Of a stretch of DNA of 64,000 bases, positions 24,794 to 59,700 are shown piece by piece; positions within the stretch are counted from its first letter, which is position 1, and each line of letters starts with the position of its first letter. The DNA comes from Camelus ferus. Its lineage: Eukaryota. Made by a program: the position numbers and the translations under genes. Under the pieces are notes generated by a model. That model was given only the letters and a program-made list of their open reading frames with translations. It was not told the origin of the DNA and ran no database searches. The stretch spans positions 1,364,001 through 1,428,000 of the forward strand of contig NC_045720.1 of the NCBI RefSeq assembly GCF_009834535.1, written 5' to 3'.

Positions 24794-24862
24794 TTCGCGC
24801 GGCTTCCGGAAGGTTCGGCCTGGTCTCGGGGCGGCCCCGTTCCCCAGAGGCGCTTCCCTGAA
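24794..24862. promoter_or_regulatory. Promoter core: perfect HSE TTCcgGAAggTTC (24804-24816) with an in-register upstream TTC (24794), and GAS-type TTCcctGAA (24854-24862)
   Basis: Exact motif matches inside a CpG island; function inferred. Confidence 0.6.
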
Positions 24863-24877
24863 GGGCCCTGCTGCAGG

Positions 24878-25090: not shown

Positions 25091-28000
25091 TGGAGAGGAC
25101 TTCAGAGTGACCACGCCAAATGCTGGACAGGATACAAAGAAACCAGGTTGTTCCCGCATTGCTGGTTACATGAAAAAATGGCGCAGCAGGTGTGTAGAAC
25201 AGAGTGCAAGTTCCTTTAAAAACTGCTTATGCAATTACCATGAGATTCCCAAATCCACTTCTGGGTGATTTCCCCAGAGACACTGAAACTGTGTCCACAC
25301 AGAACACATCCATGGATGTTTACGGCAGCTTTATCTGAAATGCTCGGGAGAAAAACCCAGATGTCCTACAGTAGTGTGCAAACCACAGCACTCTCTCACG
25401 GAGGTGAGCTGCTCAGCAGGAAAAGCAAAAGTATTGCTGGACGTCCTGAGTTGACTGAATGCCTAGGGACTCATTCTTAATGACAAATGACACTCCACCA
25501 AGGTTACATAACACACTGTTCGTTTTGTATACCATTATAGGGATGACAAAGTTGCAGAAACGGACACCAAATCCATATCGCAGGGTCGCACTGTCTGGGG
25601 ATCTGGGCGGGAAAGAGATTGATGCGTCCTTAGGAGGGATGATTGTGGGGCCAACACCATTCTCTCCCCTCGCTTGGGGAGTGACACTAACCTAGTTAGT
25701 TGTGATACTATAGTTTTGCAAGATAGTGTCAGTGGGAATGACTGAGGAAAGCACACACAGGATCTTTCTGTGTTTTGTGCCCATATATTTGAATATACAA
25801 ACATCTCAAAGTAAAACGTTTAATGGAAAAGAAATTTTTAAACAACCAGATCATTACTTGCATTACTATTTAAATGGCTACAGTTAGGAACCCAAGATTT
25901 TTGGGATAGACAAAAGATAGTACGTTCTCTTTACTAGAGGCGTGCTTTAAAATAAGGACATGACAAGATTGAAAAAAATATATAGAAAAGGGTCTACAAT
26001 TTGAATGCTGCCCAAGGGACTCTTACACACACACTGAGGCTAAGTAAACATTAACACAAGAGCGTTACTTATGTGAAGAACCACATTTTGTAGAGGTGAA
26101 GGAATAAAATAGATACCACAGTCATCACAATCTAAATCCACACGTACCTGATAGCACAGGATGAAAATACCTTGGTAGAACTTAGGTTCTAGGTACTGTG
26201 GGCAAAACAAAAACAAAAACTAAAACAGTCGCATAGTTGTCATAAACTCATCTGTCTCCATGGATTCTGGACCCTGAAGCAAGGAGACAGAATTTATTGT
26301 AGCCCTGGACTACGGTCACCATCGTTCCTCTGAAAAGACCAGACAGTAAATGTCTTCAGCTTCAGAGGCTGTCCAGTCTCTGTCACTCCTACAAAACGTT
26401 CTCTTTGTGGGGCTGGAACCAGACACAGAGGATGAGTAACCGTACGATCGTCCCTATGATCCAGCAAAGCTTCCGTCACCGACACGTTGGTGGCCTGGGC
26501 TGATCCCACAGGCTCTTGTCTGCCAGCCCCTGCTACAGACGGTCTGAGCAACACTTGCCCAGCGTCGCCAGCCCTGGCACACACCTCGTGAGACTCGCAC
26601 GTCCCCCACCCCACCCCCAAGACAAGGACAAGAGTACTCGCTGCAGCGCCCCCCTGGGCTCGATAAAACCCAGAAGCAGCCCCGTGTCCATCCGCAGTGA
26701 AGTGAGGTGTGTCCATCGGTGGAAAGTACGCAACCGCGAGAGGGAGCGCCGCGCGGCCTCGCCAGGGGCAGGGCCGGACCGCACAGAGCCCCGCAGAGAA
26801 GAGGCGGCAGACGCAAAAACGAGCAGCGCAGGTGGATTTCCTTTCCGTTGATTCAAAAGCAGGCCGAGTCACGTGGAGGCTCGGAAAGCCGGGCGCTTCC
26901 TCCTCACCTCTGGCCGTGGCGCGTCTCGTGCCTGAGTCGAGGAACGGAGGGAGGAATGCGGGGCTTTCCACCCAGGCCTGCTTCTCGAGCAGGATGCTGC
27001 TCTGCGGTTACGTGCGCTTCGGGAGGGTCCGTGAAGCTGTCGCCCTGCGATTGTGCGCTTTTCTGTAGAATGTGGGTCTTTAGCAAGCTCTTTGGCACAA
27101 ACGGAAAATCAAGGAAAGCAGGTGCCTGGGGCGCAGCCGTCAGCACTTTCTGAGGCAGGCGAGGCCGCGCGAGTGGGTAGGTGCCCCCGGTGAGCTCCGG
27201 GAGGAGGTGTCTGTGTGAGACTGTGAGGCCCCAGGTTCCCCAACATGACTCCTGCATGAAAGTAGCAAATTTCTCACATGAAGTCTCAAACGGAAATTTC
27301 TGATGCGCCAGTAGCTCTTCCTCCTCCAGTGGTTGGAGATGTCATGTCCACGGTCTCCAGGCCAAGTAGCAAAGGGGAAGGAACACAGAGGGTCAGGACC
27401 ATCAAAGACACACGTGGCCTCTGCCCTGGTTCTGCCGGATAAACTGGGCTGCAGGAGCCCGCACACTGCAGTCTGTGGGTATAGGAAGTGCCTGGCATGA
27501 GTTGATACACAGCCAAACTTGTCTGCCATATTTAGCATCTTCAAAAGACTAGAAGTACTGTCTTTTAGTGAAAAAAACTCACTCCAGACCATGACCTTTG
27601 AAGTCAGAGGCTAAAGTAAATACATTGAGACCACTGATCTGACAACGTCTCTTCCCACAGAAACTTCTTCACCGAAAGTTTAAGTAATGACCACTAGAAA
27701 AAGTGGAATTTATCTCTAGGAGAGTTTTCAATGTAGAAAAGAATAGTGAGCCCAGGAAACATACACGTGTGAGTGAATGAAAACAACAAAATTCAAATCT
27801 ACGAATGGAGTGTAAGAAACAAGAACGTTAATTAAAATGGCTGTAAAGGTTCTGCAGTTTTTGTGTGTTCGCTGAGACCTGGGCAGCGTGGCCCACACTG
27901 ACGCACCAGCACACCAAGGGCAGGCTGTGACTCCCGGCTGCATCCTGGTCCAAGGGCAGCTCGTACACCACTTGGGGCTGAGGCCCACTGTACATCTCAG

Positions 28001-30312: not shown

Positions 30313-31148
30313 GTGAGGGCGGGTTGGGGTGCAGGGGGTGGGCGGTGGGAAGCGTGGGTGCAGAGAGGAGGTGAGACAGGAGAGGCTCCAGCGCACACCC
30401 GCCTGGGGCCTCTCTAGGCAGGTGGAGAGAGGGTGACCGCCAGCTCCCGATGAGTGCCAGTCCCGAGGGGCTCAGGGGTGCCCCGGGCCGGGGAGGGGAG
30501 CAGGGGGCCTGGTGGGGACTCGAGCCAGGCCCTGTCCTCCAGGGAGAGGAAGAAGGCTAGGACTGCCATTCGGGAGCCCTCTCCAGCCTCCACAGGCCCC
30601 GAGGGGCTCGTGCACAGGTGGGACTTCTCGCCTTCTGCAGGTCAGACCCCCTGTAGGCCTGCAGGGAGCCCCCCCACCGTGGGCTCCGGGCTCTGTCCGG
30701 AGCCTGCTAGGAGAGCCCTGCTCTGATTCTCGCCCCGGAGGAGCGGAGGCTCTGTAGGGAGAGCAGCAGGTGGAACGGGCACGGGGCAGCGCACCCGAGC
30801 TGGGGATGAAGGTCTCCAGGGGCCGCTCCCACTCCGGGCTGTGGGTGAGCGTCGGAAAAGCCTCCACCCCGAGAGAGGGAGACGTGGGTGCCAGGGGCGG
30901 GGCCTGCCAGTTTGCACAAACAGTGGGGCCCGGCAGCAGCCTGGGCCGGGGCTCCCGTCTCAGCCTGGGCGAAGTGCACGAGGCCCCCCTGAGGAAAGAG
31001 GTGCTGCCAAGGCCCACGCGTGGGCAGCCGGCCCCCCGAGAACCAGCAGGCGGCTTGCCGCCCCGCCCGCCTCCCGTCGTGGGGGGGCACAGGGCTGGGG
31101 CCAGCTGCTGGCTCCGGATGCCCTGACGCTCTGCGCTCTGCTCTGCAG

Positions 31149-31348
31149 AAACGGGCCCAAGTGGCGCTCCGACCGGCTGCAGCTGAATCCGGACGTGCTG
31201 TCACTGCAGGCCGTGCAGAAGTTCGCGCCCCTGGTGGACGAGGTGGCCAGGGACTTCTCCCAAACCCTGAGGGCGAGGGTGGTGCAGAACGCCCGGGGGA
31301 GCCTGACCCTGGACATCAAGCCCAGCATCTTCTGCTACACCATCGAAG
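31149..31348 (+). CDS. CYP11B1: CYP11B exon 3
   Basis: [18 protein letters not shown]...[20 protein letters not shown]; 200 nt. Confidence 0.98.
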
Positions 31349-31476
31349 GTGTGGGCGTGCAGCGGGGGTGCCGCTCAGAGGCTCGGAGTGGGCCGGGGCT
31401 GGGGCAGGGAGGGCTAGGGGAGGCGGCCAGGAGGCCCTGGGCTGCCTCAGGCTCAGGAACTGCCTCCTCCCTGCAG

Positions 31477-31680
31477 CCAGCAACTTAGTCCTTTATGGAG
31501 AGCGGCTGGGCCTCCTCGGCCACAACCCGAATGCTGACAGCCTGAACTTCATCAGCGCGCTGGAGGCCATGTTCAAGTCCACAGTGCAGCTCATGTTCCT
31601 GCCCAGGAGCCTGTCACGCTGGACAAGCACCAGCATATGGAAGGAGCACTTCGAGGCCTGGGACTGTATCTTCCAGTATG
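31477..31680 (+). CDS. CYP11B1: CYP11B exon 4
   Basis: [14 protein letters not shown]...[14 protein letters not shown]; 204 nt. Confidence 0.98.
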
Positions 31681-31951
31681 GTGAGGGCCGAGGATCCAGC
31701 AGCATTGGGACCAGGGACCCCAGGGCCCCCTCCACTCACCACAGTCCAGGAGAGCAGAGGCCACGTGCCAGGGCTGGTGGCTTCTTTCTGGTCCCTGAGA
31801 GAGTGGGCAGGGAGGCTGGACTAGGCTGACCCTAAGAACTGGGGGTGGCACACGGAGACCTGGGGCTTCTGAGGGCTGAAGGGCAGGAGGGTGACAAAGA
31901 GAAGTGCCCCCAGCCCCAGGCCCAGGGCCTCTGTCTCTCTGGGCCCCACAG

Positions 31952-34283: not shown

Positions 34284-34379
34284 GTGAGTGAGGCCCCAGA
34301 ACCCTTCTGGCTGATACTCAGCCCGTTTGACCTTGGCCCACGGGGCGGCTGACCCTAGCCCCTCCCCACCTGACTGCAG

Positions 34380-34577
34380 ACTTTGGTGAAGGTGCTACTC
34401 TACTCCCTGGGTCGAAATGCAGCCGTGTTCGCCACGCCCGAGCGCTACCATCCCCAGCGCTGGCTGGACCACCAGGACTCTGGCGTCAGGTTCCCACACC
34501 TGGCCTTTGGCTTTGGTGTGCGCCAGTGCCTGGGGCGGCGCCTGGCAGAGGTAGAGATGCTGCTCCTGATGCACCAT
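34380..34577 (+). CDS. CYP11B1: CYP11B exon 8 (heme-binding [10 protein letters not shown])
   Basis: [13 protein letters not shown]...[10 protein letters not shown]...[18 protein letters not shown]; 198 nt. Confidence 0.98.
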
Positions 34578-34710
34578 GTGAGTGGGCCGGGCTGGGGCCT
34601 GGGCGGGCAGCCCACTTGCAGACCCCAGGCTTCTGCTCCTGGGACGCCCAGCCACAGGGTCCTGGAAGGCGGGAGAGGCTGGGCCAGGCAGAACCCTGCC
34701 TCTGTCCTAG

Positions 34711-34824
34711 GTGCTGAAAAACTTCCTGGTGGAGTCACTGGTGCAAGAGGACATCAAGATGGTCTACCGCTTCATATTGATGCCCTCCACCCTCCCACTC
34801 CTTACCTTCCGGGCCATCAACTAG
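34711..34824 (+). CDS. CYP11B1: CYP11B exon 9 to stop
   Basis: VLKNFLVE...[13 protein letters not shown]; nine exons total 1512 nt = 503 aa, no frameshift or stop. Confidence 0.98.
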
Positions 34825-38939: not shown

Positions 38940-41420
38940 TCCAAGAATCCTCATCAAGTGACTAGCAAACCACATCCAGCAGCATGTAAAATGAATTCTA
39001 CATTCCGGACCAGTGGAATTCATCCCAGGAGTAAAGGTTGGCTTAATACCCCCAAGTCAAGGACTTGCCATCGGACAATAACCCCGTCCGTAGCATACAG
39101 AGGAAAATCACACTCCCACCTTCACAGACGCAGAAAGAGCATTTAACAAAAGTCAGCGCTGCTGCCGTGGTAAGAAATACTCCACAAACCGGGAGTAGAA
39201 GGGACTTTCTTCAACTGATAAAGGACATCCATTGAAAGCCCACAGCTAACACCATTCTGAAGAGGGAAGGACTGGCTGCTGTCCTAAGATTAGGAACAAG
39301 CATGCCTGCTCTGACTGCTCCCATTCACCATAGTCCTGGAGGTTCTAGCCAGAGCAGTTAGGCTCTCAGAATGAGCGGAAGTCATCCAAGTTGGAACGGA
39401 AGGAGGAAAACTCTCTCTATTCACAGATCATATGATCTTGTCTAGAAAACGTCCTAAGGAAATCATTTTAAAAGTACTATGCCTAATGGAGTCGTCCAGC
39501 AATATCTCAAGATACAAGTACATGATCCAAAATCAGTCGTATTTCTCTTCATTTGTAATGCCAAATCCGAAAATACAATTAAGAAACCCATTCCATTTTG
39601 CAAGAGCATCAAAAAGAGTGTAACACCTAGGAATTAAAAGATGTCCAAAATTTATACTCAGAAAACCACAAAGCACCGTGGATAGAAATTAAAGAAGAGC
39701 TACAGAGTTGGAAAGCATCCTGCACCCACGAATCAGAAGATGCTGTCTTGCTCCCGTGGCGACACTCCTCATACTGGTCTCCAGACTCGATGCAACCCCT
39801 ATGAAGACTCCAGCGGACTTCTTCGTAGAAAGTGCCAGGCTGATTCTAAAATTCACAGGGAACGCAAAGAACCTAGAATAGGAACATACTCTTAAAAAAG
39901 GACAAAGTAGGAGGACTCACACCTCCTGATTTCAAAACTTACTACAAAGCCACATTAATCAAGACAGTGTGGTCCTGGCACCAGGACAGACGGATAGACC
40001 AGTGGAGGAGGACTGAGAGCCCAGGGATGACACGGCCCCTCTGTGGTCAACTGAGCTCTCATCAGGGTGCCAGGAGCAACCAGTGGGAAGAATCTATTTT
40101 CAAGCAATGATGTGGGGACAACTTTATAGCCATGTGGAGAAAACAAAACTGGACTTTACTTCAGACCAGATACGAAAACTAACTCCAGTGGACCAACGTC
40201 CTAATCATGAGAGCTAACACTGTAAAACCTTAGAAGGAATCATAAAGGTAACTCTTCAGGATCCTGGATCTTGCAAAGGATTCTTACATATGACAGGCAG
40301 GGAATGAGCACCAAATGAAAAACCAGAGACTCTGGACTTCATCAATGCTAAAAACGTTTGTTCTCGAAAGGACACTCCCAAGAGAGTGAAAAGACAAGCC
40401 ACAGAAGGGGGGGGAAGTATTTGCAAATCATATGACTGATAAGATCCTTGTGTTCTGAGTATACACAGTGTGATTACAACTCAGTAGTCAACAGACAACC
40501 CAACTGTTAATTGGGAAAATTATTTGAAGGGACATTTCTCCAAGGAAGCTGCCCTAACAGATGACTAACACACATGTGAAAAGATGCTCAGACTCATGAG
40601 CCATCAGGGAAGTGCAAGTCAAATGACGGTGAGGTGCCCCACACACCCACTCAGAGGGCCAGAATCAAGAAACCAGGAAACATCAAGTGCTGGTGAGGAG
40701 TGGAGAGAGCAGAACCTCACCCATCGCTGGTGGAGATGTAAAATGGTGCAGCCACTTTGGGAACAGCCTGACAGCTCTTCAAATGCTTGCCGAGTGAATG
40801 CAGGACCCAACCACTCCACCACTAGGCATACACCCAAGAGAATTAAAGACCTATGTCCACATAAACATCTTTACACACGTGTTGACAGCAGCATTATCCA
40901 TAATGACCAAAGGTAGGAACAACCCAAATGCCTATCAACTGAAGGAGAGATAAACCAAATGAAGTGTAACCATACAGTGGAGTATTATTTAGCCAGGAAA
41001 AGGAAGTGCTGAAACACACCACAACATGGATGAACTGTGAAAGCGTTGTGGTAAGTTAAAGAAGCCAGTCACAGAAGACTCCACATTATCTGATTCTATT
41101 CACAGGAAATGTCCAGGACAGGGAAACTTACAGGGATAGGAAGTACATTACTGGTTGCCTAGTGATGGGAGGGTGTGCGGGGAGGGGTGAGCCTGGGCAG
41201 TACAAAGGGATAATCACTAAACGGGTATGAAGTTTCTTTTCGAGGTGATATAAATATTCTAAAATTGACTATGGTGATGGTTGACATATCTGTGAATAAA
41301 CTAAAAATTACTGAATTGCATACATTAAATGAGCGAACGGCACAGTATGTAAACTATCTCAATAAAGTTATTTAAACAAACAAAGGAACAAAGTGATGAC
41401 ACAGTTGCCCTGTGGGTGAA
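38940..41420 (+). mobile_element. Old L1 ORF2 3' half and 3'UTR, degraded
   Basis: Continuous L1 ORF2-like sequence (ggaggactcacacctcctgatttcaaaacttactacaaagc; gaaaagatgctca...). Confidence 0.9.
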
Positions 41421-42671: not shown

Positions 42672-44672
42672 GGACCAGTCTTCCCGCGGGCATGTAGACT
42701 ATGCCCTGGGGCTGTTTCGTTTTTGACTAAAATACTCAATCTCTGTTCCCTCAAGTGGCAATATACTTTTGTCCGTGTGTGAGTGGTGCCTAACAAGGAA
42801 AACAACGGATCAGAGCTAACACCACAAAGAAATCCGAGTACACAATACCCAAACCATCATGCTCTTTATTTCTCCCTCCAAACAAGCCCTAAATGGGTGA
42901 CTTGCCAACTGGGGACCCCGTGGGTCACTGTCTCTGGCTCACAAAAGAGCAAAGGACAGCCAACTGGCTCTGGGGAATGGGGAGATGGTAAGACCCTCCA
43001 AAGGCAGCTTCTCATGTCAGTGTATTGCTGACCGCAATGGAGGCAAAGCTCAGGAAAAAGGTTGACTGCCCTAATCGCACAGTTCCTTCCAATTCCTCCT
43101 CAACTGTCATTTCGGGGAGGATGTCCCTCTCAAGATTACTAATACCCCCCTCGTTGCAGGTCATACTATTACAGCAATGAACAAAATAGAAAGAGTTAGA
43201 ACGAAAGTATTTTCTCCTGGGGGCTTCAGGAGGCTGCTGAGAGGGGTGCACAAATGTGCAGTTGTTTGTGCAGTTCTTGTAAACGAATAATTCACGTTCA
43301 TCGTAACCTAAAAAAGTAAAGATGACAATCATTGATTTCTCGTTTTCTGCTTGCAAATATCAAAGCACGTTTATCTTAACTAGCTCCATCCCTCACGTGT
43401 TGTTACACTGCCTGAAATTCTTGATTGAGAAGACAATCCAAGTCCACTAAGGGTTCGGTGACTCCATGACACCTTCTCCTGGAGATGTTGTCTCGCTACA
43501 CTGCCACCTCATCTCTGTATCTGGCCTCCCTATGAAGCTTCCTGGTGCCTGGTCACGGAGCTGTACAAACGCATCGTCCTGTTCACCATTTGCTCTAAGA
43601 ATTCTAGGGATCCGGAAGCAGAACGGAGCCCAGGAAACATGTTTTGCTGATGTCCCAAGGTCACACAGACCCTCCAAGCAGAGGGCCCTTGTCATCTGGC
43701 CTCCAGCTGACTTTCTGCAGCTGGCCTCACCCTGCTAGAACAGGCTCCCGCCGCACCCCTCTGCCTGCCGTTCCCCGCCCCCGGCCCAGCACGGAGGCTG
43801 ACGCACAATCACACCCACCTGCTCCCCAGTGCAGCCCTGGTGCCCCGTCCCAAGTACAGTCCCACTGGGACGCCTGTGAGCGCCTTCGCTGGAGGACTGG
43901 CCAGTGACCTCGACCAGCCAAAGCCCTGTTCAGGCTCCACCTGAGGCCTGGCTCGAGAGTCCCTGAGTTAAGCTGCCGCGGCCTCACTCACCAGTTCTGT
44001 GCCCCTGGCCTCACACAGACACCTCCTCCCGGAGCTCACCGGGGGCACCTACCCACTCGCGCGGCCTCGCCTGCCTCAGAAAGTGCTGACGGCTGCGCCC
44101 CAGGCACCTGCTTTCCTTGATTTTCCGTTTGTGCCAAAGAGCTTGCTAAAGACCCACATTCTACAGAAAAGCGCACAATCGCAGGGCGACAGCTTCACGG
44201 ACCCTCCCGAAGCGCACGTAACCGCAGAGCAGCATCCTGCTCGAGAAGCAGGCCTGGGTGGAAAGCCCCGCATTCCTCCCTCCGTTCCTCGACTCAGGCA
44301 CGAGACGCGCCACGGCCAGAGGTGAGGAGGAAGCGCCCGGCTTTCCGAGCCTCCACGTGACTCGGCCTGCTTTTGAATCAACGGAAAGGAAATCCACCTG
44401 CGCTGCTCGTTTTTGCGTCTGCCGCCTCTTCTCTGCGGGGCTCTGTGCGGTCCGGCCCTGCCCCTGGCGAGGCCGCGCGGCGCTCCCTCTCGCGGTTGCG
44501 TACTTTCCACCGATGGACACACCTCACTTCACTGCGGATGGACACGGGGCTGCTTCTGGGTTTTATCGAGCCCAGGGGGGCGCTGCAGCGAGTACTCTTG
44601 TCCTTGTCTTGGGGGTGGGGTGGGGGACGTGCGAGTCTCACGAGGTGTGTGCCAGGGCTGGCGACGCTGGGC
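42672..44672 (+). repeat. Segmental direct duplication copy 2 (pairs with 14870-16870)
   Basis: Offset 27802; diverges from copy 1 after 44672. Confidence 0.97.
43012..43307 (-). pseudogene. GML: Orphan GML last exon (upstream exons absent)
   Basis: Same translation as 15210-15505 (two synonymous changes), intact acceptor and poly(A) signal (42865-42870); no copies of the other GML coding exons to the right. Confidence 0.9.
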
Positions 44673-46970
44673 AAGTGTTGCTCAGACCGTCTGTAGCAGG
44701 GGCTGGCAGACAAGAGCCTGTGGGATCAGCCCAGGCCACCAACGTGTCGGTGACGGAAGCTTTGCTGGATCATAGGGACGATCGTACGGTTACTCATCCT
44801 CTGTGTCTGGTTCCAGCCCCACAAAGAGAACGTTTTGTAGGAGTGACAGAGACTGGACAGCCTCTGAAGCTGAAGACATTTACTGTCTGGTCTTTTCAGA
44901 GGAACGATGGTGACCGTAGTCCAGGGCTACAATAAATTCTGTCTCCTTGCTTCAGGGTCCAGAATCCATGGAGACAGATGAGTTTATGACAACTATGCGA
45001 CTGTTTTAGTTTTTGTTTTTGTTTTGCCCACAGTACCTAGAACCTAAGTTCTACCAAGGTATTTTCATCCTGTGCTATCAGGTACGTGTGGATTTAGATT
45101 GTGATGACTGTGGTATCTATTTTATTCCTTCACCTCTACAAAATGTGGTTCTTCACATAAGTAACGCTCTTGTGTTAATGTTTACTTAGCCTCAGTGTGT
45201 GTGTAAGAGTCCCTTGGGCAGCATTCAAATTGTAGACCCTTTTCTATATATTTTTTTCAATCTTGTCATGTCCTTATTTTAAAGCACGCCTCTAGTAAAG
45301 AGAACGTACTATCTTTTGTCTATCCCAAAAATCTTGGGTTCCTAACTGTAGCCATTTAAATAGTAATGCAAGTAATGATCTGGTTGTTTAAAAATTTCTT
45401 TTCCATTAAACGTTTTACTTTGAGATGTTTGTATATTCAAATATATGGGCACAAAACACAGAAAGATCCTGTGTGTGCTTTCCTCAGTCATTCCCACTGA
45501 CACTATCTTGCAAAACTATAGTATCACAACTAACTAGGTTAGTGTCACTCCCCAAGCGAGGGGAGAGAATGGTGTTGGCCCCACAATCATCCCTCCTAAG
45601 GACGCATCAATCTCTTTCCCGCCCAGATCCCCAGACAGTGCGACCCTGCGATATGGATTTGGTGTCCGTTTCTGCAACTTTGTCATCCCTATAATGGTAT
45701 ACAAAACGAACAGTGTGTTATGTAACCTTGGTGGAGTGTCATTTGTCATTAAGAATGAGTCCCTAGGCATTCAGTCAACTCAGGACGTCCAGCAATACTT
45801 TTGCTTTTCCTGCTGAGCAGCTCACCTCCGTGAGAGAGTGCTGTGGTTTGCACACTACTGTAGGACATCTGGGTTTTTCTCCCGAGCATTTCAGATAAAG
45901 CTGCCGTAAACATCCATGGATGTGTTCTGTGTGGACACAGTTTCAGTGTCTCTGGGGAAATCACCCAGAAGTGGATTTGGGAATCTCATGGTAATTGCAT
46001 AAGCAGTTTTTAAAGGAACTTGCACTCTGTTCTACACACCTGCTGCGCCATTTTTTCATGTAACCAGCAATGCGGGAACAACCTGGTTTCTTTGTATCCT
46101 GTCCAGCATTTGGCGTGGTCACTCTGAAGTCCTCTCCACTGCCCCAGTCCTGCCCAGGCTTTCTGGAACCTCCCCCAGAGGTTCTCTCTGGAGTTCCCCT
46201 TCTCCCCATGTTCTGCCCAGACCTTCTGGGACTGTCTTCCCCCTCCCCCACCCCTGTCCCGCCCAGACCTCTAGACTCTTCCCCCACCCCCTCTGTCCCC
46301 TCCCACCGTCCCCCCCAACCCCGTTTCCCGCCCAGACCTTCTGGAACCTCCCCTGCAGCAGGGCCCTTCAGGGAAGCGCCTCTGGGGAACGGGGCCGCCC
46401 CGAGACCAGGCCGAACCTTCCGGAAGCCGCGCGAAGCCTGTCGGGAGACGCCCGTCCGACCTGCCGCTGAGAGAACGGGGCCTGGAGCCCGCCCGGCCTC
46501 CCCTCGCCCACCTGCGGCTCCCCGCGCCACACCGGCTGTGCGGGCCCTCGAGGTCGTGTCCGCGGAAGGTCACAAAGCTCGGGGCGGGGAACTGGGTCGG
46601 GCAGGGGGACGGAGGAAGGTTCCAGAAAGCCTGGGCGGGAAACAGGGTGGGGGCGGGGATGGCGGGAGGGGACAGAGGGGGTGGGGGAAGGTTCCAGAAA
46701 GCCTGGGCGGGAACCGGGAATGCGGGGGTGGGGGCCGGTGGGGGATGGGGACGGAGGGGTGCAGGGGAAGCGTCCAGAGGATTGGGCAGGATAGGGGTTG
46801 GGGGACGGGGAAGGTTCCAGAAAGCCTGGGCGGGAAACAGGGTGGGGGCGGGGATGGCGGGAGGGGACAGAGGGGGTGGGGGAAGGTTCCAGAAAGTCTG
46901 GGCGGGACTCGGGCGTGCGGGGGTGGGGGCCGGTGGGGGTGGGGGCCGTGGGGCAGTGGGGCCGGGGCCG
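44010..46970 (+). repeat. Inverted repeat, right arm (pairs with 24325-27219)
   Basis: Coordinate sum 71229; differs only inside the minisatellite (extra 72-bp unit). Confidence 0.97.
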
Positions 46971-46992
46971 GGGACGGAGGAAGGTTCCAGAA
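46413..46992. promoter_or_regulatory. HSE array: perfect GAAnnTTCnnGAA at 46413, 46615, 46687, 46810, 46882, 46980
   Basis: Exact motif matches; 72-bp spacing 46615-46687 repeated at 46810-46882; function inferred. Confidence 0.7.
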
Positions 46993-46999
46993 GGTCTGG

Positions 47000-47050
47000 G
47001 CAGGACTCAGGGCGGTGAGGGCAGCGCTGAAGGCTCAGACTCGGCCTCAG
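47000..47050 (+). other. LY6K: Candidate non-coding exon 1 of LY6K
   Basis: CCTCAG/GTCAGT donor (GT 47051-47052) paralogous to the GML donor; acceptor at 52060, 18 nt before ATG; 5' boundary unknown. Confidence 0.4.
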
Positions 47051-48689
47051 GTCAGTGTGTGTGGGTCCCGGGGCTCGGCCCTGCTCCCCTGTAGGAGGGG
47101 TCACAGATCCCGGTAGCACCGCCCTTCTGTTCCGCCCGGCAGAATAGCATCCCTGCCCTGGGGTCCATGGCCTCCTCTGCCCACCTATCAATCCCTCCTG
47201 CGGGCGTCCCCGTCAACCCCCTGCCCGGTGCCATATACCGCCACCTTCCTTTGGGACGGATGGTCCCCTGCACCCACCTTACATCTTCAGCGCTGAGATT
47301 CCTGCCCCACCTGGACCCCACCTAGCATCCCCTCTCCTGAGTCTTGAGGCTCCCCAACTCCCAGCTCATACACTGATGCCTTGTAAATTCTACGTTTATT
47401 TAAATTAAGCCCCTAGGAGCATCGGGCATTTCAGGCTACAACAATTTGCAGACCTGACATTCCCTTATCTTTCAGTTAGTCAGCACCATCAGCGTGTGAG
47501 TCAGGAGGGCAGCGTGGAGGTCTGACCAGGCCGTCGCTTTCTTGCCCTCAGCAGAGAGGGAGAGCAGGCTACAGGCGGCCGCGGAACTTGGCCCTCTGCA
47601 CCCTTTCCTGACCTCCGCGCTGGAATGGGGTGGGGGTGGGGTGGGTCAGAGTAATCCGGGATCCAAAATAATCCCCAGGATCTTTTTCCCAGAGATCTCC
47701 TCACGTGGTTTCTTTCTGGTTCACACCAAATGAGGCTCCTTACCGCACGTGTTTGGAGCCGACTCACCCACGCGGTATTACTAGTGCAGCTACTCGCTAA
47801 TTCACGATGGTTATGGATCTGAGACCCGCCGCACTGGACTGTCACATATGCTGGCAAGTTCAAACACTTCTGTGGAAAAACTATAAATGTAAGATTAGTT
47901 TCATTTGCAAAGAATACACATTTTGCCTGAATTGGGAGTGAGAAGAAGGCGTCAGCGAAGTTGGTCCCGATGGCCCAGTTCTCCCGTCATCTGGTTTCCT
48001 TCCCGCGCCGTCTTTGCTCTATCGGGGCAGCGGAAGCAGTGGGAAGGGCCCCCTGTTTTAATGCTCATTGACTTAACCGTGTTCTTATCCGCACAGAAGT
48101 CTCTGTACCTCGTAATACTGTGCTTAGCAATCCAAAAATAGTCTAAATCCCATCCCCAGCCCGTTTCACCTGTTTCCTGCAGAAGCCTTAGATTCCCCCA
48201 CCCAGGGCTATGCAGTCAGATTCAGGACCTTCAGTCTCTAACTCTAGAATTCAGCCTCTTGTTCAAATATTTTCTGCTCTGTGCATGTTTCTCATAATGG
48301 GTTGAATCTGGGCTAGAATGTATACAGCACTTTTTTCATCCCTGGCATTTTATTTAAAATACTTGAAACAGTAAAGCTGAAAGAACTTACAGTGCATTCA
48401 AGGATACCTACCACTGGAGTCTACGCCCAGGGCCTCATGCATGCTGAGCGTGCACGCTACACTGACCCGTCTCCTGCTCCTTCTGCAGCCGTTCTTTAAC
48501 TCAGACCATCTTTTGAGTCATTTTAAGCTGAGCGGCAGATATCAGCATTCTTTCCCCTACAAACTGCAGCAGTTTGCCTCGTATGATTCCTGCTTTGTGT
48601 CCTATCTAAAAATTCTTTGGAGAACTCAAGATTGCAAAAATTGTTCCTGTTTCCTTCTAGAAGCTTTCTGGTTTTGTATTTAGATAAGT

Positions 48690-48848
48690 CTTTTTTCTTT
48701 TCTTTTTTTTTTTTGGAGGGGGAGGTAATTAGGTTTATCAATTAATTTATTATTGTTATTTATTTATTTGATGGAGGCTCTGGGGATTGAACCCAGGACC
48801 TCCTGCATGCTAAGTATGCACTCTACCACTGAGCTATACTCTCCCCTC
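48690..48848 (-). mobile_element. Full-length vic-1-type tRNA-derived SINE with 9-bp TSD
   Basis: Reverse strand GGGGAGAGTATAGCTCAGTGGTAGAGTGCATACTTAGCATGCAGGAGGTCCTGGGTTCAATCCCCAG...aattacctccccctcc-A tail; TSD tagataagt at 48681-48689 and 48849-48857. Confidence 0.92.
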
Positions 48849-50023
48849 TAGATAAGTTTTATAGCTTATGGTTAGATCTGTAATCTCCTTCAAATGGATC
48901 TTTGTAAATGGTGTGAGGTAAGGGGAAAGTCACGTTTATGTTTTCTCTTTTTTCCTGACTTGTTTTTTGCATATGGTCGCGCAGCTCCACTTGTTGCAGA
49001 AGCGGTCCTTTCTTCATTGTATTATCTTGGCACCATTGTCTAAAGGCCATTGATCGCACGTGCAGATCTGTTTCTCAGCTCTTTGTTTTGCTCTCTTCCG
49101 CGATGGCGCGTCTGAGCTTTTTGCAGCGTCGCCCTGCTTGGTCACTGTGGCTTTCTAGTAAGTCTCACAGTCAAGTAGCTTCAGCCTTCCAGCTTTGCTC
49201 TTCTTTTTCCAAATTATTTTGGCTGTTCTAGGGCCTTCACTTTTCCACCTAAATTTTAGAATCAGTTGTTAATTTCTATGTTAAAAAAATACACTTCCAG
49301 GGATTCTGACTGAGATCATGATGAATCTACAGACCCATTTAGGGAGAACTGACATCTTAGCACTAGAAAGTCTTACGGTCCAGGAACATGGTGTCTCTCT
49401 CCACTTTTTAGTGCTCACTGCTCTTTAAAATTCTGTTCATCTGGTGATGCTGCGACCTCAGCTTCCTGGTGGGCTGATAAATTAGACATTTGTGGTTTAT
49501 CTGGTTTTCTCGTCTTGCAGTTGTGTTTGTGGTTGTTCAAGCGGGAGACAGGTTCTCTTGAGGTTTTCTACTTCCTAACCAGACAAACTGAAAAAGACTC
49601 AAGCAACAATAAATCCTGAAAGGCATGATGAGAGCCACCCACACCTTCCAGGGCGCTCCGAGGGCCCAGTCACCGACATGCTGCCACGCAGACGTGTGGA
49701 CACACAAAGCAACTGGAAGGATACAACCCACAAAGAGAACCAGGCAGAATTAAGACAGCGTAAGGAGCATCTCAGGTCAATAGTGGACGGAACAGCCATT
49801 CTAAATGATGGAGTCAAGCTAACTGGGCCGCCATCTGAAAAAACACAACGTGGAAGGAGGAGTTCCAAATGGATCAAGGATTTAAATAGGAAAAGGAAAA
49901 GGAAAACAAGACTTCTGGTAAAGCTATCAGAAGAAAATATGGAAGAATTCATTTATCACCTGTTTGGAGGAAGGTTTTTTTTTAACTACCACTCAGAATC
50001 CAAAAGCGTAAAATAAAAGGCGG

Positions 50024-50569
50024 TGACAAAGATCTTCTCCTGACCAAACTCCAGCCAGGCTTCTCTAAGTCATTTCTCAGCTAGGCTTCAAGCTTGGCTG
50101 TAAAGACTTGAGCAGTCGCTGAGGTCACTTCTGACAGCCCCAGGCCACATCCCTGGGGTGATCCTCCCCAACCCTGCCCCTGCCGCTTGCCTCAGAGTAC
50201 AGCCTGAGAAAACTCACAGCTGCCCGAGCTGCGTGCCAGCTGGCGCCTGAAGATGGGCCCCCACTCCCAGCCCCCCTGGGAGGGGGCAGGGGCTTACCGT
50301 CAGTAAGTGCCAGTTAGCCGGCCCAGGTAGCAAACACAGGGACCAACCTTGTGTTCCTGCTGTGGGAATTTTCACTTCCCTGACTCTGCTGAGCCCCCCT
50401 CACCACCTCTCTGCTCCCTCACTCTTGCTTTGAAATGCCCAGTCACGCCTGTGTCAATCCAAGTGGAGGTCGCTTCACACCGGCTCTCTTCCCCACCGAA
50501 AAGGTATGTTCATGGTTAAAATCCATCCTTACTACTTTTAACTAGTGTCTGGCTTTGTTTATCTTCGAC
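50024..50569 (+). mobile_element. ERV1 solo LTR (MER31-like)
   Basis: TGACAAAGATCTTCTCCTGACCAAACTCCAGCCAGGCTTCTCT start; ...actagtgtctggctttgtttatcttcgac end. Confidence 0.75.
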
Positions 50570-50769
50570 CATGAAGAAGCAAGCACTTCTGCTCTGCAAA
50601 AATGCCAAGACCTGTATCGAATAGGAAAAAAGTTTTTCTGCCTTTTTATCACAGAGAACTGACTACTGTTATAGTCCATAAAGAAATCGACAGAAAAGTA
50701 TTTGGGCAACGGACTAGAATAGAGAACACAGAAAAGGGAATAGAAGTACCCACCTGAAATACAAAAGCT

Positions 50770-51350
50770 TGCTCACCGTCACTCGTAATTAGAGAAATGC
50801 AAATTCGTACTGCAGGGCACAGGTCTTGCCCACCATCCGGATAGATGAAAATCCAAAGCAAGGAGGACGCGCTCTTTTCGACGGTGCTGCGGGGACAGGC
50901 ACTCACACCTCAAAGGTGGGAGGACGAAACGGAGGTGGCTATGGGGCAAACGCATCCGGACTGCAAAAAAGTGGAGCCGGCGGCAGGCAGCCTCGTCGCC
51001 AGGAGCCTTCTTCCCGCGGACCCGCATGCGTGAGGCGTGACGTGCGGCTTTCCGTCTGGTGCGACGCGCTGGCCACAGCACAAGGCCCATCGGAGCAGGC
51101 TGTGCGAACGCACGGTGCTACATCCAGGCCGCAGCACGCTCTGCCGCCCACCCTCACAACCAGAACCCAAACCAGGAGCGCTCCCCTGCGGAGGCAGAGG
51201 CTCCGGCCAGGCCTGCCGGGAGGGCTGCGGGAGGAGAGCGGCTCGCCGCGCGCGCTCCTCTGGGGCCACGACCTGGGAGAAACCAGCACGCAGGCCCGCG
51301 GGGCCCAGGAGGGGACAGGCCGCAAGCACCTGTGGGCTCCCGGTGCCCTC
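50770..51350 (+). promoter_or_regulatory. CpG island built on an L1 ORF2 3' relic, about 0.7-1.3 kb upstream of LY6K ATG
   Basis: tcactcgtaattagagaaatgcaaatt L1 anchor runs into CpG-dense sequence. Confidence 0.55.
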
Positions 51351-52078
51351 TCCCCGTGTGCATCCCGCCCAGAGGGGGCCGACCCCTCTCCCCTTTGACC
51401 CCCACCTGCCAGACAGCAGGGGGAACTTGGGGAACATTCCTGAAGAAGGGGTAGCGGGGCAGCCTGGAAGGGGGCGGAGTGGGCATGCCTGGGGGCATGA
51501 GTTCTGGGGGCCTTGCGAGAGGAGGGCCGGCCTCAGCATCAGGGGCAGGTGCGCGGGCGGTGGGACTGCAGCCGGCCTGGGGTGGGCCAGGCACTGCAGG
51601 GGTACCCAAGCCTTCCTGTGCCCTGGGGTCAGGCTGCACCAGTGGTGACCTGGCCACAGATGGAGAGGAAGATGGCGCTGGGTGGGCAGGGACCCCATGG
51701 GGACTCTTGAGAGAGCAGGAGTTCACAGCAGCGGGCTGGGGACGAGAGGAGGGAAACCTGGTACAGCCTTCAGGGAACAGCAGCAGGAACACCCACTGAA
51801 CAGGTCTGCTGGGACATGGGTGAGGAAGGGCCCAGAGTTCCAGGGGGTGGGGGCTCCCTGGGGACAGAGGGGACTTGGTGGTAGTAACACGCCTAACACC
51901 CAGAGGCCACACCCGGCCCCGGGCCCAAGTGTGAGGAGGAGAGGGTCTGCCCCAGTGTCCAGCAGGGAAGGGCTTTAAGTGGTGGTGGACACACAGGGGC
52001 TGGGTCTAACCCTGGAGCCACAGGGCTGACCAAGTGGCCCTGCTCACTCCTCACGTCCAGGGCCAGGCATCACTGGAA

Positions 52079-52157
52079 ATGACCGTCCTCCTTGCTTTGC
52101 TCCTGGTCATGGGCATGCCGTGGGTGGAGACCAACATTACCGTGTCTGGAAGACAAA
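52079..52157 (+). CDS. LY6K: LY6K first coding exon (signal peptide)
   Basis: MTVLLALLLVMGMPWVETNITVSGRQ+A; GTAAGT donor, phase 1. Confidence 0.9.
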
Positions 52158-53023
52158 GTAAGTGCGCGGCCTTCGGCCTCCTGGGCTGGGAGGAGGAGGT
52201 GGGCTGGAATGCAGACACAGGGGTGGCCTCCATATCTGGATGCTGCCATGGCCCCACGTGGGTCTGGGCAATTGCAGAGCAGAGGACTCAGTGGGCATTA
52301 GGAGGGTGGCTGGCTGACTTGGACACCCAGTGTGGGGGGCCTCTGGATGTGGGCCCCCCAAGGGCGGGCAGGGATGGCTGGTTTATTCCCCAGCACCCAG
52401 CTTGCCCCACAATGGCCCTGCCTTCTTGGCAGAGGCCAAGCCTGACCCCACCCACGTGGGCCTTCTGGGGCTGTCTCTAAGAACAGGAAAGCTGCTGGAG
52501 TGTCACCTGCTTCTCCCCCGGGGAGCGAGTCCTGCCCCAGCGTAGACCCACCAGCGGGCTGCCGCTCTGGGGTCAGGGTGGACGCAAGGCCTCGGGGACG
52601 AGGAGTGGGGTGGGCCAGGAAGCGGGTGGAAAGGGCACCTTTGGGAGCAGACTGCACAGCCCTGGAGTCCCTTTTTCTAGAGTACCTGGAGGGGAGATAT
52701 GTCAGTGTTGTGTGTGGACGTGGGGCGCAGTGTTCCCGTGCCAGGCTGTGAGTGTGTGTGTCTGGTGTGAGAGTGCAGGAATGTGTTGGTGCAGGGTGTC
52801 TGGGCGTGGGGGTGTGACCGAGACATGGCCTGTGTGTGGACTGGGGGAGGCCAGGAGAGGAGAGGAGCAGAGGAACTCAGGGGATGGGGCAGGCTGTGGG
52901 GAGCGGGGAGCTGGAGGGACCCGCTGGCGGTGCTCGCTTGGAGGAAGAGAGGGCTGTTGTCCGTCTGAACGTACTAGAGGGCTGCAGGGTCCACTCTCCT
53001 TATGCTTCGATGCCTCGTTTCAG

Positions 53024-53125
53024 GACGGCTGAGGTGTCACGTGTGTGAGATAGAGAACAGTTTCGACTGCCAACAGCCAATGGACTGTGACCAGGGCGTT
53101 GAGTACTGCTCCACTGCTGCCGTGA
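53024..53125 (+). CDS. LY6K: LY6K second coding exon
   Basis: (R)RLRCHVCEIENSFDCQQPMDCDQGVEYCSTAAV; resembles human LY6K WCHVCERENTFEC...YCVIAAV; 102 nt. Confidence 0.92.
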
Positions 53126-54201
53126 GTGAGTATGAGCCCCGCCCCTGACGGGGCTCCCCAGGCAGCTCAGCAGAGCACTCAGGGCTTGGGGTCTGTCTGT
53201 GTCGTCAACAGAGAACAGCTGACATAAAAGTGAGCCTCTGTTTACACTGGAAGAACAGGGTCCTGTGAAGCCAGGCGTGCAGGCAGGGGCTGGAGGTGAC
53301 CCCGCTGACGCGAGTGCCAGCAGAGCCCGAGTCCGGCCACAGCCCCGACCCCTGGCCAGCGCGCAGCAGCGACGGGCAGGGAGAAGTTGGTGGAGATTCC
53401 TTTTCATTCACTTCTGAGGGAAAAATTAAGCTTTACTGACTTCAGATGGCCGGAGAATAGCTTTACGAGAGATGTACATAATAAGGGGCGTGGGCTCCAC
53501 ACGTTCTGAAAAGAGTGGGCGCGCTTTAAAATGTCTGGAGACCGCCACTCTGTCATCTGTCATTCACCTGAGGATTCTGGCCTCATGAAGAACTCTCTCC
53601 CAAGCGGGTGTCTGAAGGCTCCGCCTGACCCAGCCGCGGCCTTGCCGGGGCCCGAGAAGCAAGCTCCCTCTGGGGGCTCCATGTCCCGGGAAGCGTGCGG
53701 GGTGCTGGGCTGGCTGAGGCGCCAGTCTCCCTGCAGCCTCACGTCACGTAACTCAGTATGGAGCCGCGATGGCCTGGGGACTCGTGCAACAGGGTGAAGT
53801 CCTGGGCCTGGCCCGGCTCCCAGCGCTGGGCCGTGGCCAGGATGGCCAGGAGTCCCTTGCTCCTGTGCAACTGTCTGTGGTCCCAAAGGCCTGAGCCACC
53901 CTCGTTTGAGGACTTGAGGCTGAAAGAGCCAGAGACCCTCAGGCCCAGGTTCCCGAGCCCGGAGACTGGCCAGGGCTGGGGTATCTGGTGCCACACTGCA
54001 CGCCAGCCATCCCCCACTGCCCCCCAGAAGCAACTCTGAACGCAAAGGCTTGACTCTCCTCCCAACTCCTGGCCAGGTGCCCTCTTTGAGTGGGGCCTGA
54101 GAGTGCTCCCGGCAGGGGCAGGGCTGGACAGATTTCAGACGGAAACTGCTCATGTTGCCGCCTCCAACTCATGTGCTTCCTCTGTCTCTATTTCCCATCA
54201 G

Positions 54202-54491
54202 GAGTTTTTCCACGGTTCTTCTATGTTTCAAAGCAATGCATGAAGTACTGTGCGTTAAGCTTTCAGGGGATGCGGACAGCCAAGTCGTTTGTGCTCGTAA
54301 AGCCCACGCCCTTCCTGTTCATCTCGTGCTGCAGGGAGAACCTGTGCAACGTTGAGAAACCAGTCATCGAGGAAAACTCAGAAGATAAATACCGAGAGGT
54401 GGGAGGGGCCCCAGGCGGGCAGGGCAGCAGCGCCAGGCTGGTGACTCTCGTGGCACTGGCCTCGGTGCTCCTGGGCCTCAGGCTGCCGTGA
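54202..54491 (+). CDS. LY6K: LY6K last coding exon (LU C-terminus and GPI signal)
   Basis: VFPRFFYVSKQCMKYC...FISCCRENLCN...LVTLVALASVLLGLRLP*; 79+102+290=471 nt (156 aa, 10 Cys). Confidence 0.92.
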
Positions 54492-54525
54492 TGAAGCCGA
54501 CTTGCAGATGGTTGGCACCTGTTGC

Positions 54526-54531
54526 ATTAAA
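54526..54531 (+). terminator. LY6K: LY6K poly(A) signal ATTAAA
   Basis: 35 nt after the stop, followed by T-rich sequence. Confidence 0.6.
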
Positions 54532-56690
54532 CTTGTTTTCCATGGATTAGCTCACCGGTGGTCTGACTTCCCAGGGACTTGGAAATGGGGTGAGCGGGCA
54601 GGGGGCTCTAGCCAACAGCTGGAATTAGAGCAAGTCCAAACCTTCCCCACAGTGATTTTGTTTACAAGTTTCTCTTTGAAACCCAGCCTTGTGACTGCTC
54701 ATTGCTGACAGTCATTCTTGATTCTGCACGTTGGGGGGCCTCAGTATTGATGGAGGGGAGGGCCTGAGACCCTGCCTCCACTCCTGTGAAGAGCAGTGCT
54801 GACATTTCTACTCTTTGCCAGGAGTCAGAATAATATGGGCCTAAGACATCCCTGGAGTGAGATCCTCCTCGGTCTAGGGGATGGGACAGGACCTCGGGAC
54901 GGCCCTCTGCGGCCAGCCACGGGACCCATGGCTGCTCCCCCCTCAGCTCATGCCGCCAGATTCCAGGAGACAGAAAATGAGGAATTCTGCTGAATAAGCT
55001 TGGACTTCACCTGTCAACTGGCACAGGTACATAGACTCACAAACCCTTCTGTGGATATTTGTCCCACATCTGAGCCTGGTAGGCAGGTAGGCAGCAGCAG
55101 GCTCAGCCTTTATGCAGTCTCGTGGTGAGATGCAGCCCCCTAGACGGTGGAAAAGTCAGGCTGGAGGTTCTGCACAAGCCAGATGCTTTCTCCCTGCGGC
55201 GTGCGACCCAGCCCCATCTGCTGCTCACCTTCCCCCCCAGCTTCTGCCCGCATTCTGGCCACCCCTGACCCGGTCTGACTCAGAGACTGCTGCTGCCACC
55301 TGAGATCTTTGCAGACCAGGTCTCAGTGGCCCCAGGAGGAGGCACGGTGGGGCGGGCAGAGGGTGGTTTCTTTCTGTGCCATCCCTGAGGCAGGGAGGAG
55401 GTCCATCTTGGTCACATCCAGACACTCTAAACCAGAAACCTAAGTCTGTCCAGGGGGACGGCGGGCGGGAAGGGCCCCTGAGGGGTGACTGGCAGCTCCA
55501 GGCCTGGAGAAGTTTTCCAGCACCTACTAGGTTCCTACTGTGGGCCCACCCCTGTTCCAGGCACACGCTCTGTGCTCACACCCTGCTGCTCCTGCCTGTG
55601 CCCAGAACAGCGCCTGGGCCTGTCCTGACGCACATCCTGGGACTGGAGTTTGGGGAGCATCCCTTCTGTGAGGGCAGGCCAGAGAAGCAAAAGGTCAGCT
55701 ACCTGAGTTCCCATAGCAACCTGACACTGCAGTCTCTTCACAAGGAGGGTGGCTGTGTGGGGTGTGAAATAACTGGGAGGCTGAGACGTGTGAGTGTGGA
55801 GAATTCCTAACTTTGGATCTGGGGGGTCTCTGGTGATCTGCTGAGGAGCCCTTTCAGTGACTAGACAATGGGAAACATCAAATTATGGCAGGATGAGGAG
55901 ACCAAGTGAACTGGGGCACATGTTGTCACCAGTATGACAGATACTCTTTCTAGAAAACTCACTGTGGAAAGAAGGAGACGGTAAGAGAGCGGTATTTAGA
56001 AAAAACAGATCGAGGGTCAACGTCGGTGCCGCACTCTGAATGTAAAGACTTGGGAGCCTTTATCTGCTAAGAGTGGGAAGCACGAGTGAAGGATGGAAGC
56101 AGGAGGTGATGGCCCAGTGGGTGCAGTGAGGGCCCCGTGCAGGCAGGACAGCATAGGACCAGGGCAGCGGCCGCAGCCCCGACAGGGAGGATAGACACTT
56201 CCTCCTGCGACCCAGCACAGCTGTGGCCAGAAGCACACGGAAAGTTCATGTGTGGGAAGGAGCCAGGAAGCTGAAGGAAAAGACATGAATACTCAGGTCA
56301 CGGAATCACCACAGACCTGGACTGAGACACCTGGAGTAAAATGTCCAGATTTCAAGCCAGGAGAAAATCCTAAAAGCTGCCAGAGAGAAAAGACATGTCT
56401 TCAAGGGAACAGCAGTTACACCCTGTGCAGACCTCGGTTCAACAGGAGGCAGAGGACCAGACAGTGACAGCTCTGCAGCGTTAAACGACAGTAACTAGAA
56501 ATTAGCCTGGATTTGAACACTTAAATAAAGGCTTTTTCCGAATAAGCAAAAAACTGGAATGGTTTACCTTTGACTAGTCACTGCTAAAGGAACTCCCCAA
56601 AAGCCTTCTTTAAGGGGAATGAGAATAATCCCAGACACATGGAATGCAAGAAGGAATCACAAATTAAGAAAAAATGTCAGTATGTGGTGG

Positions 56691-59550: not shown

Positions 59551-59700
59551 GGGTGGGGGTGTAGCTCAAGTGGCAGAGCGTGTGCTTAGCACGCACGAGG
59601 TCCGGGGTTCAATCCCCAGCACCTCCATTAGAATAAACATACATAAATAGAAATCTTAATTACCTCCCCTCCAAAAGTAAAAATAAATAAACTTTAAATA
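59551..59700 (+). mobile_element. vic-1-type tRNA-derived SINE
   Basis: GTGTAGCTCAAGTGGCAGAGCGTGTGCTTAGCACGCACGAGGTCCGGGGTTCAATCCCCAGCACCTCC...aattacctcccctcc tail. Confidence 0.92.

Follow-up and report, generated by a model that had tools for sequence, protein, structure and literature searches.

What is a short, G-rich tandem repeat made of perfect heat-shock elements (HSEs) doing near LY6K, and why does a mirrored array face the gene GML? The repeat lies in a 64,000-nucleotide stretch of the Camelus ferus genome (contig NC_045720.1, positions 1,364,001 to 1,428,000; hereafter the window, in whose coordinates camelid positions are given). An earlier note, made from the letters of this stretch, proposed that it is a promoter element shared by the two genes and driven by heat-shock factors (HSFs). 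We found that the array is one part of a larger module that is real, ancient, and almost certainly both regulatory and transcript-structural. The reading that we favor, with somewhat more confidence than doubt, is that an ancient module combining promoter and first exon lies between the divergent GML and LY6K genes, that 46148-47056 is one of its copies, and that it is driven by HSF as proposed.

An HSE was defined as at least three contiguous inverted nGAAn pentamers (nGAAnnTTCnnGAAn), and the pattern used for matching was GAANNTTCNNGAA. On both strands of the window, 11 perfect matches were found where 0.39 were expected, and none of 100 shuffles reached 11 or more. These matches qualify as HSEs by sequence, occupancy being a separate criterion. 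The six plus-strand positions listed in the earlier note, the core site and five unit sites of Table 1, proved exact. Its count of only two distinct site sequences overlooked a third (GAACATTCCTGAA), which lies close to LY6K and may matter more to that gene than the distal array. It had also named the HSE as the best-conserved part of the repeat unit; within the window the whole 27-bp core of the unit (GGAAGGTTCCAGAAAGCCTGGGCGGGA) is invariant in three units. In the older degenerate units (46565, 46766, the four inverted units at 46148-46352, and the last unit on the GML side at 24312) the HSE is broken and TGGGC outlasts it. The array is a minisatellite of seven head-to-tail units, all within the 10-100 bp range of such repeats, and its HSEs are spaced 72-123 bp apart over 0.4 kb of G-rich sequence. 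Two of its units, U1 and U4, are the same over their full 72 bp, an identity that is a recent higher-order duplication. Tandem Repeats Finder reports only 46807-46953 of the array, with a period of 72, and a scan of the window against Rfam gave no match at the array.

The wider value of these sites rests on other mammals, for which the note had called for a motif scan of the orthologous regions. Nine loci were obtained by way of LY6K and GML proteins: pig, minke whale, takin, sperm whale, bat, jaguar, colugo, aye-aye and Mus pahari. Each of the nine holds 2-8 perfect HSEs, against 0.03-0.38 expected from composition. The claim of a shared module gained from this comparison, as each of the nine mammals that possess the module (the camelid and eight others, with 1-7 in the eight) has perfect HSEs within it; in the Mus pahari locus the module itself was not found. 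The pig LY6K locus is collinear with 45266-55947 of the window. Its array is syntenic and holds six perfect HSEs (0.18 expected), which show differences at spacer positions. Our first view had been that the HSE was a by-product of tandem amplification in a recent duplication, and it was revised on this syntenic array with its six HSEs and their spacer differences. The minke whale has seven perfect HSEs in its array and one proximal to the gene, and the takin has two; the array period is ~44-48 bp in pig and whale. In the sperm whale, five perfect HSEs precede GML and three lie beside a duplicated GML last exon.

Outside these cetartiodactyls, divergent GML and LY6K flank the module and its HSEs in bat, jaguar and colugo; in aye-aye they apparently do so too. 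The genes are head to head in bat (three perfect HSEs), where 527 bp separate the annotated coding starts, and in jaguar (three perfect HSEs in the module), and both species carry units in both orientations. Divergent 5' ends within ~1-2 kb of each other are thus found in bat, and the arrangement is compatible with this in jaguar and colugo; in the camelid the module is duplicated and GML and LY6K are 27 kb apart, so beyond such spacing. The colugo has two perfect HSEs, one at the core site and one in a perfect unit that is followed by CAG|GTCGGT, and the aye-aye has one in the module, at the core site, and one proximal. With positions numbered within each retrieved locus, bat (L006:9999), colugo (3745) and aye-aye (4293) have a perfect equivalent of the core site; in pig, minke whale and takin the equivalent is imperfect. 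The perfect site at 7849 in jaguar is read as a LY6K-directed unit because exon 1 of cat LY6K isoform X3 ends there. At 4430-4700 of the aye-aye locus (L010), in the place of the GML-directed unit, stands another C-rich tandem repeat with a period, judged by eye, of ~55-60 bp. In the colugo (L011, 3700-4080) the LY6K-directed strand of the camelid, bat and jaguar modules finds its match in the GML-directed strand. A flip of the palindromic core in the course of evolution may lie behind this alignment, and any assignment of module arms to genes is unreliable.

The HSE proximal to LY6K has a history of its own. Its minke whale counterpart reads GAACATTCCAGAA (L004:9371), 630 bp before the ATG, in an aligned block that scores 83 against a null of 18; at the same position the pig reads GAGCATTCCGGAA, and in the takin the site is lost. 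Mus pahari carries a perfect HSE, GGAATGTTCCAGAAAG, ~95 bp before Ly6k exon 1 (L009:9906), which aligns significantly with an aye-aye site (L010:1289; score 35 against a null of 15). The aye-aye site is 8.7 kb upstream of GML and stands on the opposite strand. Both of these sites resemble the camelid site at 51432 in motif, but orthology between the camelid site and the HSE of the mouse Ly6k promoter is unsupported by alignment (score 13, null 13); of the alignments made, those of mouse with aye-aye and of camelid with minke whale alone are significant. In sum, the placental mammals examined, all of them Boreoeutheria, have kept perfect HSEs in the control region of LY6K and GML.

What the unit is can be read from gene models in two of these lineages. 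The 27-bp core recurs across species, with 13-19% of its positions departing from the consensus, and the all-species consensus (GGAAGGTTCCAGAAGGTCTGGGCAGGA) combines a canonical three-pentamer HSE with a 5' splice-site-like AAG|GT, dividing at the junction into GGAAGGTTCCAGAAG|GTCTGGGCAGGA. Exon 1 of cat LY6K isoform X3 maps into the CpG-rich core of the jaguar locus and ends GGTTCCAGAAG|GT, and exon 1 of the bat LY6K model ends GAAGGTTCCAGAAG|GT. Both exons thus end inside the unit (CCAGAAG|GT), which makes the unit the end of a first exon together with its donor. Homology with these models would put the camelid array past the transcription start, within exon 1 or intron 1. A candidate donor (CAG|GTCAGT) stands ~45 bp past the last camelid unit and is the sole strong donor-like site in 46366-47100, the donor score being a crude consensus count and not a trained splice model. 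This post-array donor is kept in pig, minke whale, takin and on the camelid GML side; bat (CTG|GTCAGTG), sperm whale (CCG|GTCAGCG) and colugo (CAG|GTCGGT) have variants of it. A dog GML gene model has an upstream exon. The bat LY6K model (L006 10001-10132, protein P0011) begins in the core HSE and skips the signal-peptide exon (~11250-11318); its protein is probably wrong, and its first exon may reflect a real transcript. We regard as established the anatomy of the sequence, its synteny, the retention of perfect HSEs across species and the exon models in cat, bat and camelids.

The core between the camelid inverted and direct units has the composition of a CpG island and is likely to be a bidirectional transcription-start region. 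The four or five inverted units on its other side are interpreted as the relic of the arm that ran in the opposite direction. As a whole, the module looks like a palindromic bidirectional promoter with two first exons running outward. A scan of 46000-47300 for bacterial promoters and terminators was uninformative, as expected in a mammal.

Table 1. Features of the LY6K/GML region, in window coordinates
Feature	Position	Strand	Remarks
Core HSE GAACCTTCCGGAA	46413-46425	+	inside CpG-rich core
Unit HSEs GAAGGTTCCAGAA	46615, 46687, 46810, 46882, 46980	+	pattern match
GML-side unit HSEs GAAGGTTCCAGAA	24407, 24530, 24602	-	pattern match
GML-side core HSE GAACCTTCCGGAA	24804-24816	-	pattern match
Proximal HSE GAACATTCCTGAA	51432-51444	+	647 bp 5' of LY6K start codon
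Inverted degenerate units, four or five	46148-46352	-	no perfect HSE; two read GAGGTTCCAGAA
CpG-rich core between inverted and direct units	46366-46613		248 bp; GC 0.75; CpG observed/expected 0.90
G-rich direct tandem array, LY6K side	46565-47005	+	seven units (U0-U6), 43-98 bp each
U0	46565	+	degenerate, HSE lost
U1	46614	+	72 bp
U2	46686	+	80 bp
U3	46766	+	43 bp, HSE lost
U4	46809	+	72 bp, same as U1
U5	46881	+	98 bp
U6	46979	+	last unit
Candidate 5' splice site CAG|GTCAGT	47048-47056	+	exon end 47050; ~45 bp past last unit
GML-side array	24312-24665	-	one 72-bp unit fewer; last unit without HSE
GML-side candidate 5' splice site CAG|GTCAGTG	24233-24241	-	exon end 24241; 4.1 kb upstream of GML start-codon exon
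High-identity tract, inverted copy of 24394-27219	44010-46835	+	99.86% over 2826 bp; ends inside array
Direct copy of 14870-16870	42672-44672	-	99.35%; second GML last exon; abuts LY6K-side module
Upstream exon, RefSeq camelid LY6K isoform X1	50435-50503	+	23 N-terminal residues of the model; donor AAG|GTATGT
LY6K start-codon exon	52061-52157	+	ATG 52079; signal peptide; acceptor AG 52059-52060
LY6K exons, Ly6/uPAR domain and GPI signal	~53024-53125, ~54202-54491	+	
GML start-codon exon	20102-20018	-	ATG 20084; acceptor AG 20104-20103
GML other coding exons	~19400-19293; last ~15505-15210	-	

Is the HSE itself what has been kept? In a rival explanation it is a passenger: the unit was kept as the 3' end of a first exon and its 5' splice site in a GC-rich promoter, and was multiplied by amplification and concerted evolution, with no role for HSF at the array. 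Several observations weigh against an HSF-driven array. Among unique units pooled from seven species, the HSE triplets depart from the unit consensus at 72 of 558 positions (13%) and the HSE spacers at 29 of 248 (12%; p=0.73), and at 19% (p=0.026) the right half of the core does only marginally worse than the triplets; these counts are approximate, the gapped unit alignment behind them having shifted a few end columns. Selective constraint on the GAA/TTC triplets over the spacers was not found in this pool, and since the triplets are no better kept than the spacers, the pattern of substitution does not single out HSF. The two halves of the core are also conserved alike when cross-anchored (~76% and 73%), every old camelid unit has lost its HSE, and in the takin only 2 of ~10 units keep one. 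The third GAA partly overlaps the AAG|GT consensus, and its conservation could be explained without HSF. The passenger explanation can further point to the GGT at the splice junction, which is the best-kept part of the right half, to the donor inside the unit in the cat and bat models, and to the identical 72-bp units as a sign of very recent copying. As to transcript structure, HSEs downstream of a transcription start are atypical, the first exon of camelid RefSeq isoform X1 is at 50.4 kb and not at the array, and a camelid exon at the array is a prediction from homology. Human LY6K, finally, is described in the citing literature as a non-classical HSF1 target in cancer cells and not as a heat-shock gene.

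Other observations count against the passenger explanation. One donor suffices, yet many units have been retained, and most camelid units have lost the donor GT (AAAGCC) but keep the HSE. In the direct array of the pig, counted by eye, mismatches fall at 5 of 81 triplet positions, 9 of 36 spacer positions and 25 of 117 positions of the right half, which is the only set with the pattern expected from constraint on the triplets. The single-copy units of bat, jaguar and colugo preserve GAAGGTTCCAGAAGG exactly while their right half has decayed. Several distant lineages also have perfect HSEs apart from the units, at the core and proximal positions, among them one at the Ly6k promoter in mouse and aye-aye, and human LY6K is bound by HSF1 according to the papers discussed below. 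We consider the passenger explanation doubtful, while still a serious contender. No single reading of the motif is better than HSF binding, which we regard as plausible, with about as much to be said for it as against it.

Other proteins might also read the unit. At the core site TTCCGGAAG could take an ETS factor; Rel/NF-kB-like or NFAT-like dimers could bind the GGAANNTTCC palindrome, Sp1 the GGGCGG boxes, and G-quadruplex-binding proteins the G-rich linkers. Every unit contains the GGAANNTTCC palindrome, as does the proximal site (as GGAACATTCC in the camelid and GGAATGTTCC in the mouse), the array holds eight GGGCGG boxes and ten canonical G-quadruplex motifs (46581-46953), and spacers as well conserved as triplets would fit a longer and different recognition sequence. 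Against such binders, the third GAA is kept in units, core site and proximal site, and the GGAANNTTCC palindrome does not need it; the GGGCGG boxes and G-rich linkers vary between species, pig and whale units reading GGGCAGG and the linkers differing in length and sequence; and the candidates are proposed from general consensus sequences. We hold this explanation to be quite improbable.

The mirror image of the array in front of GML had been offered as a second, matching instance. A mirrored array facing GML does exist (24407-24816, minus strand), but its sequence is a recent copy at 99.86% identity, and it therefore provides no independent evidence for conservation of the HSE. The copied tract has the features of a segmental duplication or gene conversion laid over an older homology, in that 2826 bp at 99.86% are followed by 223 bp at 78%; beyond the tract, 46901-47112 and 24400-24180 are 78% identical. 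The flanks that follow the arrays group by side, the camelid GML side with the sperm whale GML side and the LY6K-side flanks together, and on this grouping the duplication of the module predates the camelid-cetacean split. These patterns point to two layers, an old duplication and, over it, a recent gene conversion or re-duplication. Of the GML last exon there are likewise two identical copies (43015-43359 and 15213-15557, both on the minus strand). The second adjoins the LY6K-side module without GML exons 2 and 3, so it is a partial GML copy, and homology falls with distance from that exon, to 94.7% at 39467-39878 and 86.5% at 34314-34781. The sperm whale locus (L007) shows a duplicated GML last exon as well, with a truncated three-HSE array between the copies (15690-15995, 18463-18554 and 22020-22325). 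Rearrangement of the module recurs in cetartiodactyls.

Near-identity of this kind raises the question of whether the mirror is an assembly artefact, in which inversion haplotypes or collapsed or expanded repeats were stitched together. Such an artefact would touch the mirror only, and not the array on the LY6K side. It would account for identities of 99.86% and 99.35% over 2-2.8 kb. Inverted repeats of 99.2% identity lie within the GML locus (16208-16870 and 26557-27219), and the sequence of 42672-46835 is exactly what the junction of an inversion between them should look like; this suggests a structural polymorphism or an assembly of two haplotypes. A P450 gene fragment (30841-31829, plus strand; two open frames match Pfam p450 and are CYP11B-like) lies between the module copies, unlike in bat and jaguar, where the P450 lies beyond the GML 3' end, so the camelid region is either rearranged or mis-assembled. 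On the other side, identity drops to only 78% just past the arrays, and the two flanks have their orthologues on different sides in whales. A GML-side array together with a duplicated last exon of GML occurs independently in the sperm whale, and the two camelid arrays differ by a whole unit. The copy borders also show no assembly gap, the only runs of N being at 8851-9080 and 12485-12694. An artefact is accordingly very unlikely in our judgment.

The two genes themselves are present as the note had said, their database relatives being named lymphocyte antigen 6K and GPI-anchored molecule-like protein. Each start-codon exon has a good acceptor 18 nucleotides 5' of its ATG, and for LY6K the acceptor AG means that this exon is internal in at least one isoform; RefSeq camelid isoform X1 joins the upstream exon of Table 1 to the acceptor at 52060. 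The end of the array is 5.1 kb from the LY6K start-codon exon, and the end of the GML-side array is 4.2 kb from that of GML. The description of the array as upstream of LY6K thus needs correcting, since it stands ~5.1 kb before the start-codon exon and downstream of the CpG-rich core, and is not a proximal promoter. Elsewhere in the window, a tRNA-like match (Rfam RF00005, 53 bits, 59555-59627, plus strand) has an inverted partner of 83% identity at 48771-48830, and both are most likely copies of a tRNA-derived short interspersed element (SINE) and not tRNA genes. A poly-A tract of 80 bp (8705-8784), beside a masked or gap stretch in an AT-rich region with the two runs of N, probably represents retrotransposon tails.

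A history and a mode of action can be proposed for the HSF-driven module. In cetartiodactyls the unit of one arm would have been tandemly amplified to ~7-12 units, and duplication of the module would have given GML and LY6K one copy each. In the camelid, recent gene conversion or re-duplication would then have made 2.8 kb of the copies 99.86% identical. Transcription is proposed to begin in the CpG-rich core. The array would then either close a distal, non-coding first exon of LY6K or open intron 1, and splicing may run from 47050, or from a donor inside a unit, to the acceptor at 52060. HSF1 or HSF2 trimers on the unit HSEs, the core HSE (46413) and the proximal HSE (51432) would drive or boost LY6K, and the sister copy of the module would do likewise for GML. 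Occupancy by HSF, use of the array exon in camelids, and a response to heat or in the testis are what this scheme predicts.

A bolder version treats the array as a copy-number-variable HSF1/HSF2 platform at the GML/LY6K module, expanded specifically in cetartiodactyls, that controls either the level of two sperm-surface Ly6 proteins or their sensitivity to temperature. We rate it as improbable, and the idea that repeat number tunes a response to heat or in the testis is pure speculation. If the platform existed, it would link repeat number with testicular thermal biology; the testes of whales are internal, and camels are exposed to heat load. The amplified, length-variable arrays of pigs, whales and camels would provide a natural dosage series. 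GML has so far been known as a p53 target; if the HSEs are docking sites for HSF, GML is predicted to be a second HSF target, and the cancer-type HSF1 programme at LY6K would be an ancient germ-line circuit put to new use. If HSF does not bind, the locus still offers a palindromic bidirectional promoter whose first-exon end has turned into a minisatellite.

The link between HSF1 and LY6K is itself published, and to that extent the finding is not as new as the note had supposed. According to the papers that cite Mendillo et al. 2012 (PMC3478452, PMC4214332, PMC4236052, PMC7226471 and PMC5740759), human LY6K is an HSF1-bound and HSF1-dependent "cancer signature" gene. It is repeatedly named there among the strongest non-chaperone genes bound by HSF1 in malignant cells, and it is a flagship non-chaperone HSF1 target in human tumours. 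Of the repeat, its sharing with GML and its conservation no prior description was found: our literature search yielded no account of an HSE-bearing minisatellite, of LY6K with HSF2 or HSF5, or of a LY6K/GML bidirectional promoter. HSF5 recognizes a different motif with a single GAA (PMC11059408) and is therefore not an obvious reader of the window sites. Sperm migration in mice depends on LY6K (Fujihara et al. 2014, as listed in PMC4839075), which is also a cancer-testis antigen (PMC3031884). Ly6k adjoins Gml in the mouse gene order, and human LY6K has moved away from GML (PMC4839075).

Five known systems help to place the module. The closest is HSF1-bound human LY6K, which is the same gene under the same proposed factor family and encodes a non-chaperone, GPI-anchored cancer-testis antigen; it differs in that the citing literature consulted describes no tandem array, no sharing with GML and no cross-species conservation, and in that human LY6K is not beside GML (PMC4839075). 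Promoters of the hsp70 type likewise gather several trimers of inverted nGAAn repeats within a few hundred base pairs, where cooperative binding of HSF trimers is expected. Their clusters keep within ~300 bp of the transcription start, on its upstream side, and do not form tandem repeats, whereas the camelid sites are in a minisatellite, probably downstream of the start and 5 kb from the coding exon. Satellite III of nuclear stress bodies (PMC8535310) also presents HSF with a tandem repeat of variable copy number, but it is a megabase, pericentromeric, GGAAT-type repeat that yields non-coding RNA, in contrast to a genic 0.4-kb array of canonical trimeric HSEs. In Caenorhabditis, HSEs borne by Helitrons (PMC6927752) show that the copying of sequence can multiply HSEs and recruit genes to HSF control; those elements spread genome-wide by transposition, and the camelid HSEs by local tandem amplification and segmental duplication. 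Head-to-head CpG-island promoters, finally, share with the GML/LY6K module a short CpG-rich core between divergent paralogous genes and first exons that run outward. The module differs from them in that its arms are inverted copies of one HSE/donor unit, and in that cetartiodactyls have duplicated it and amplified one arm.

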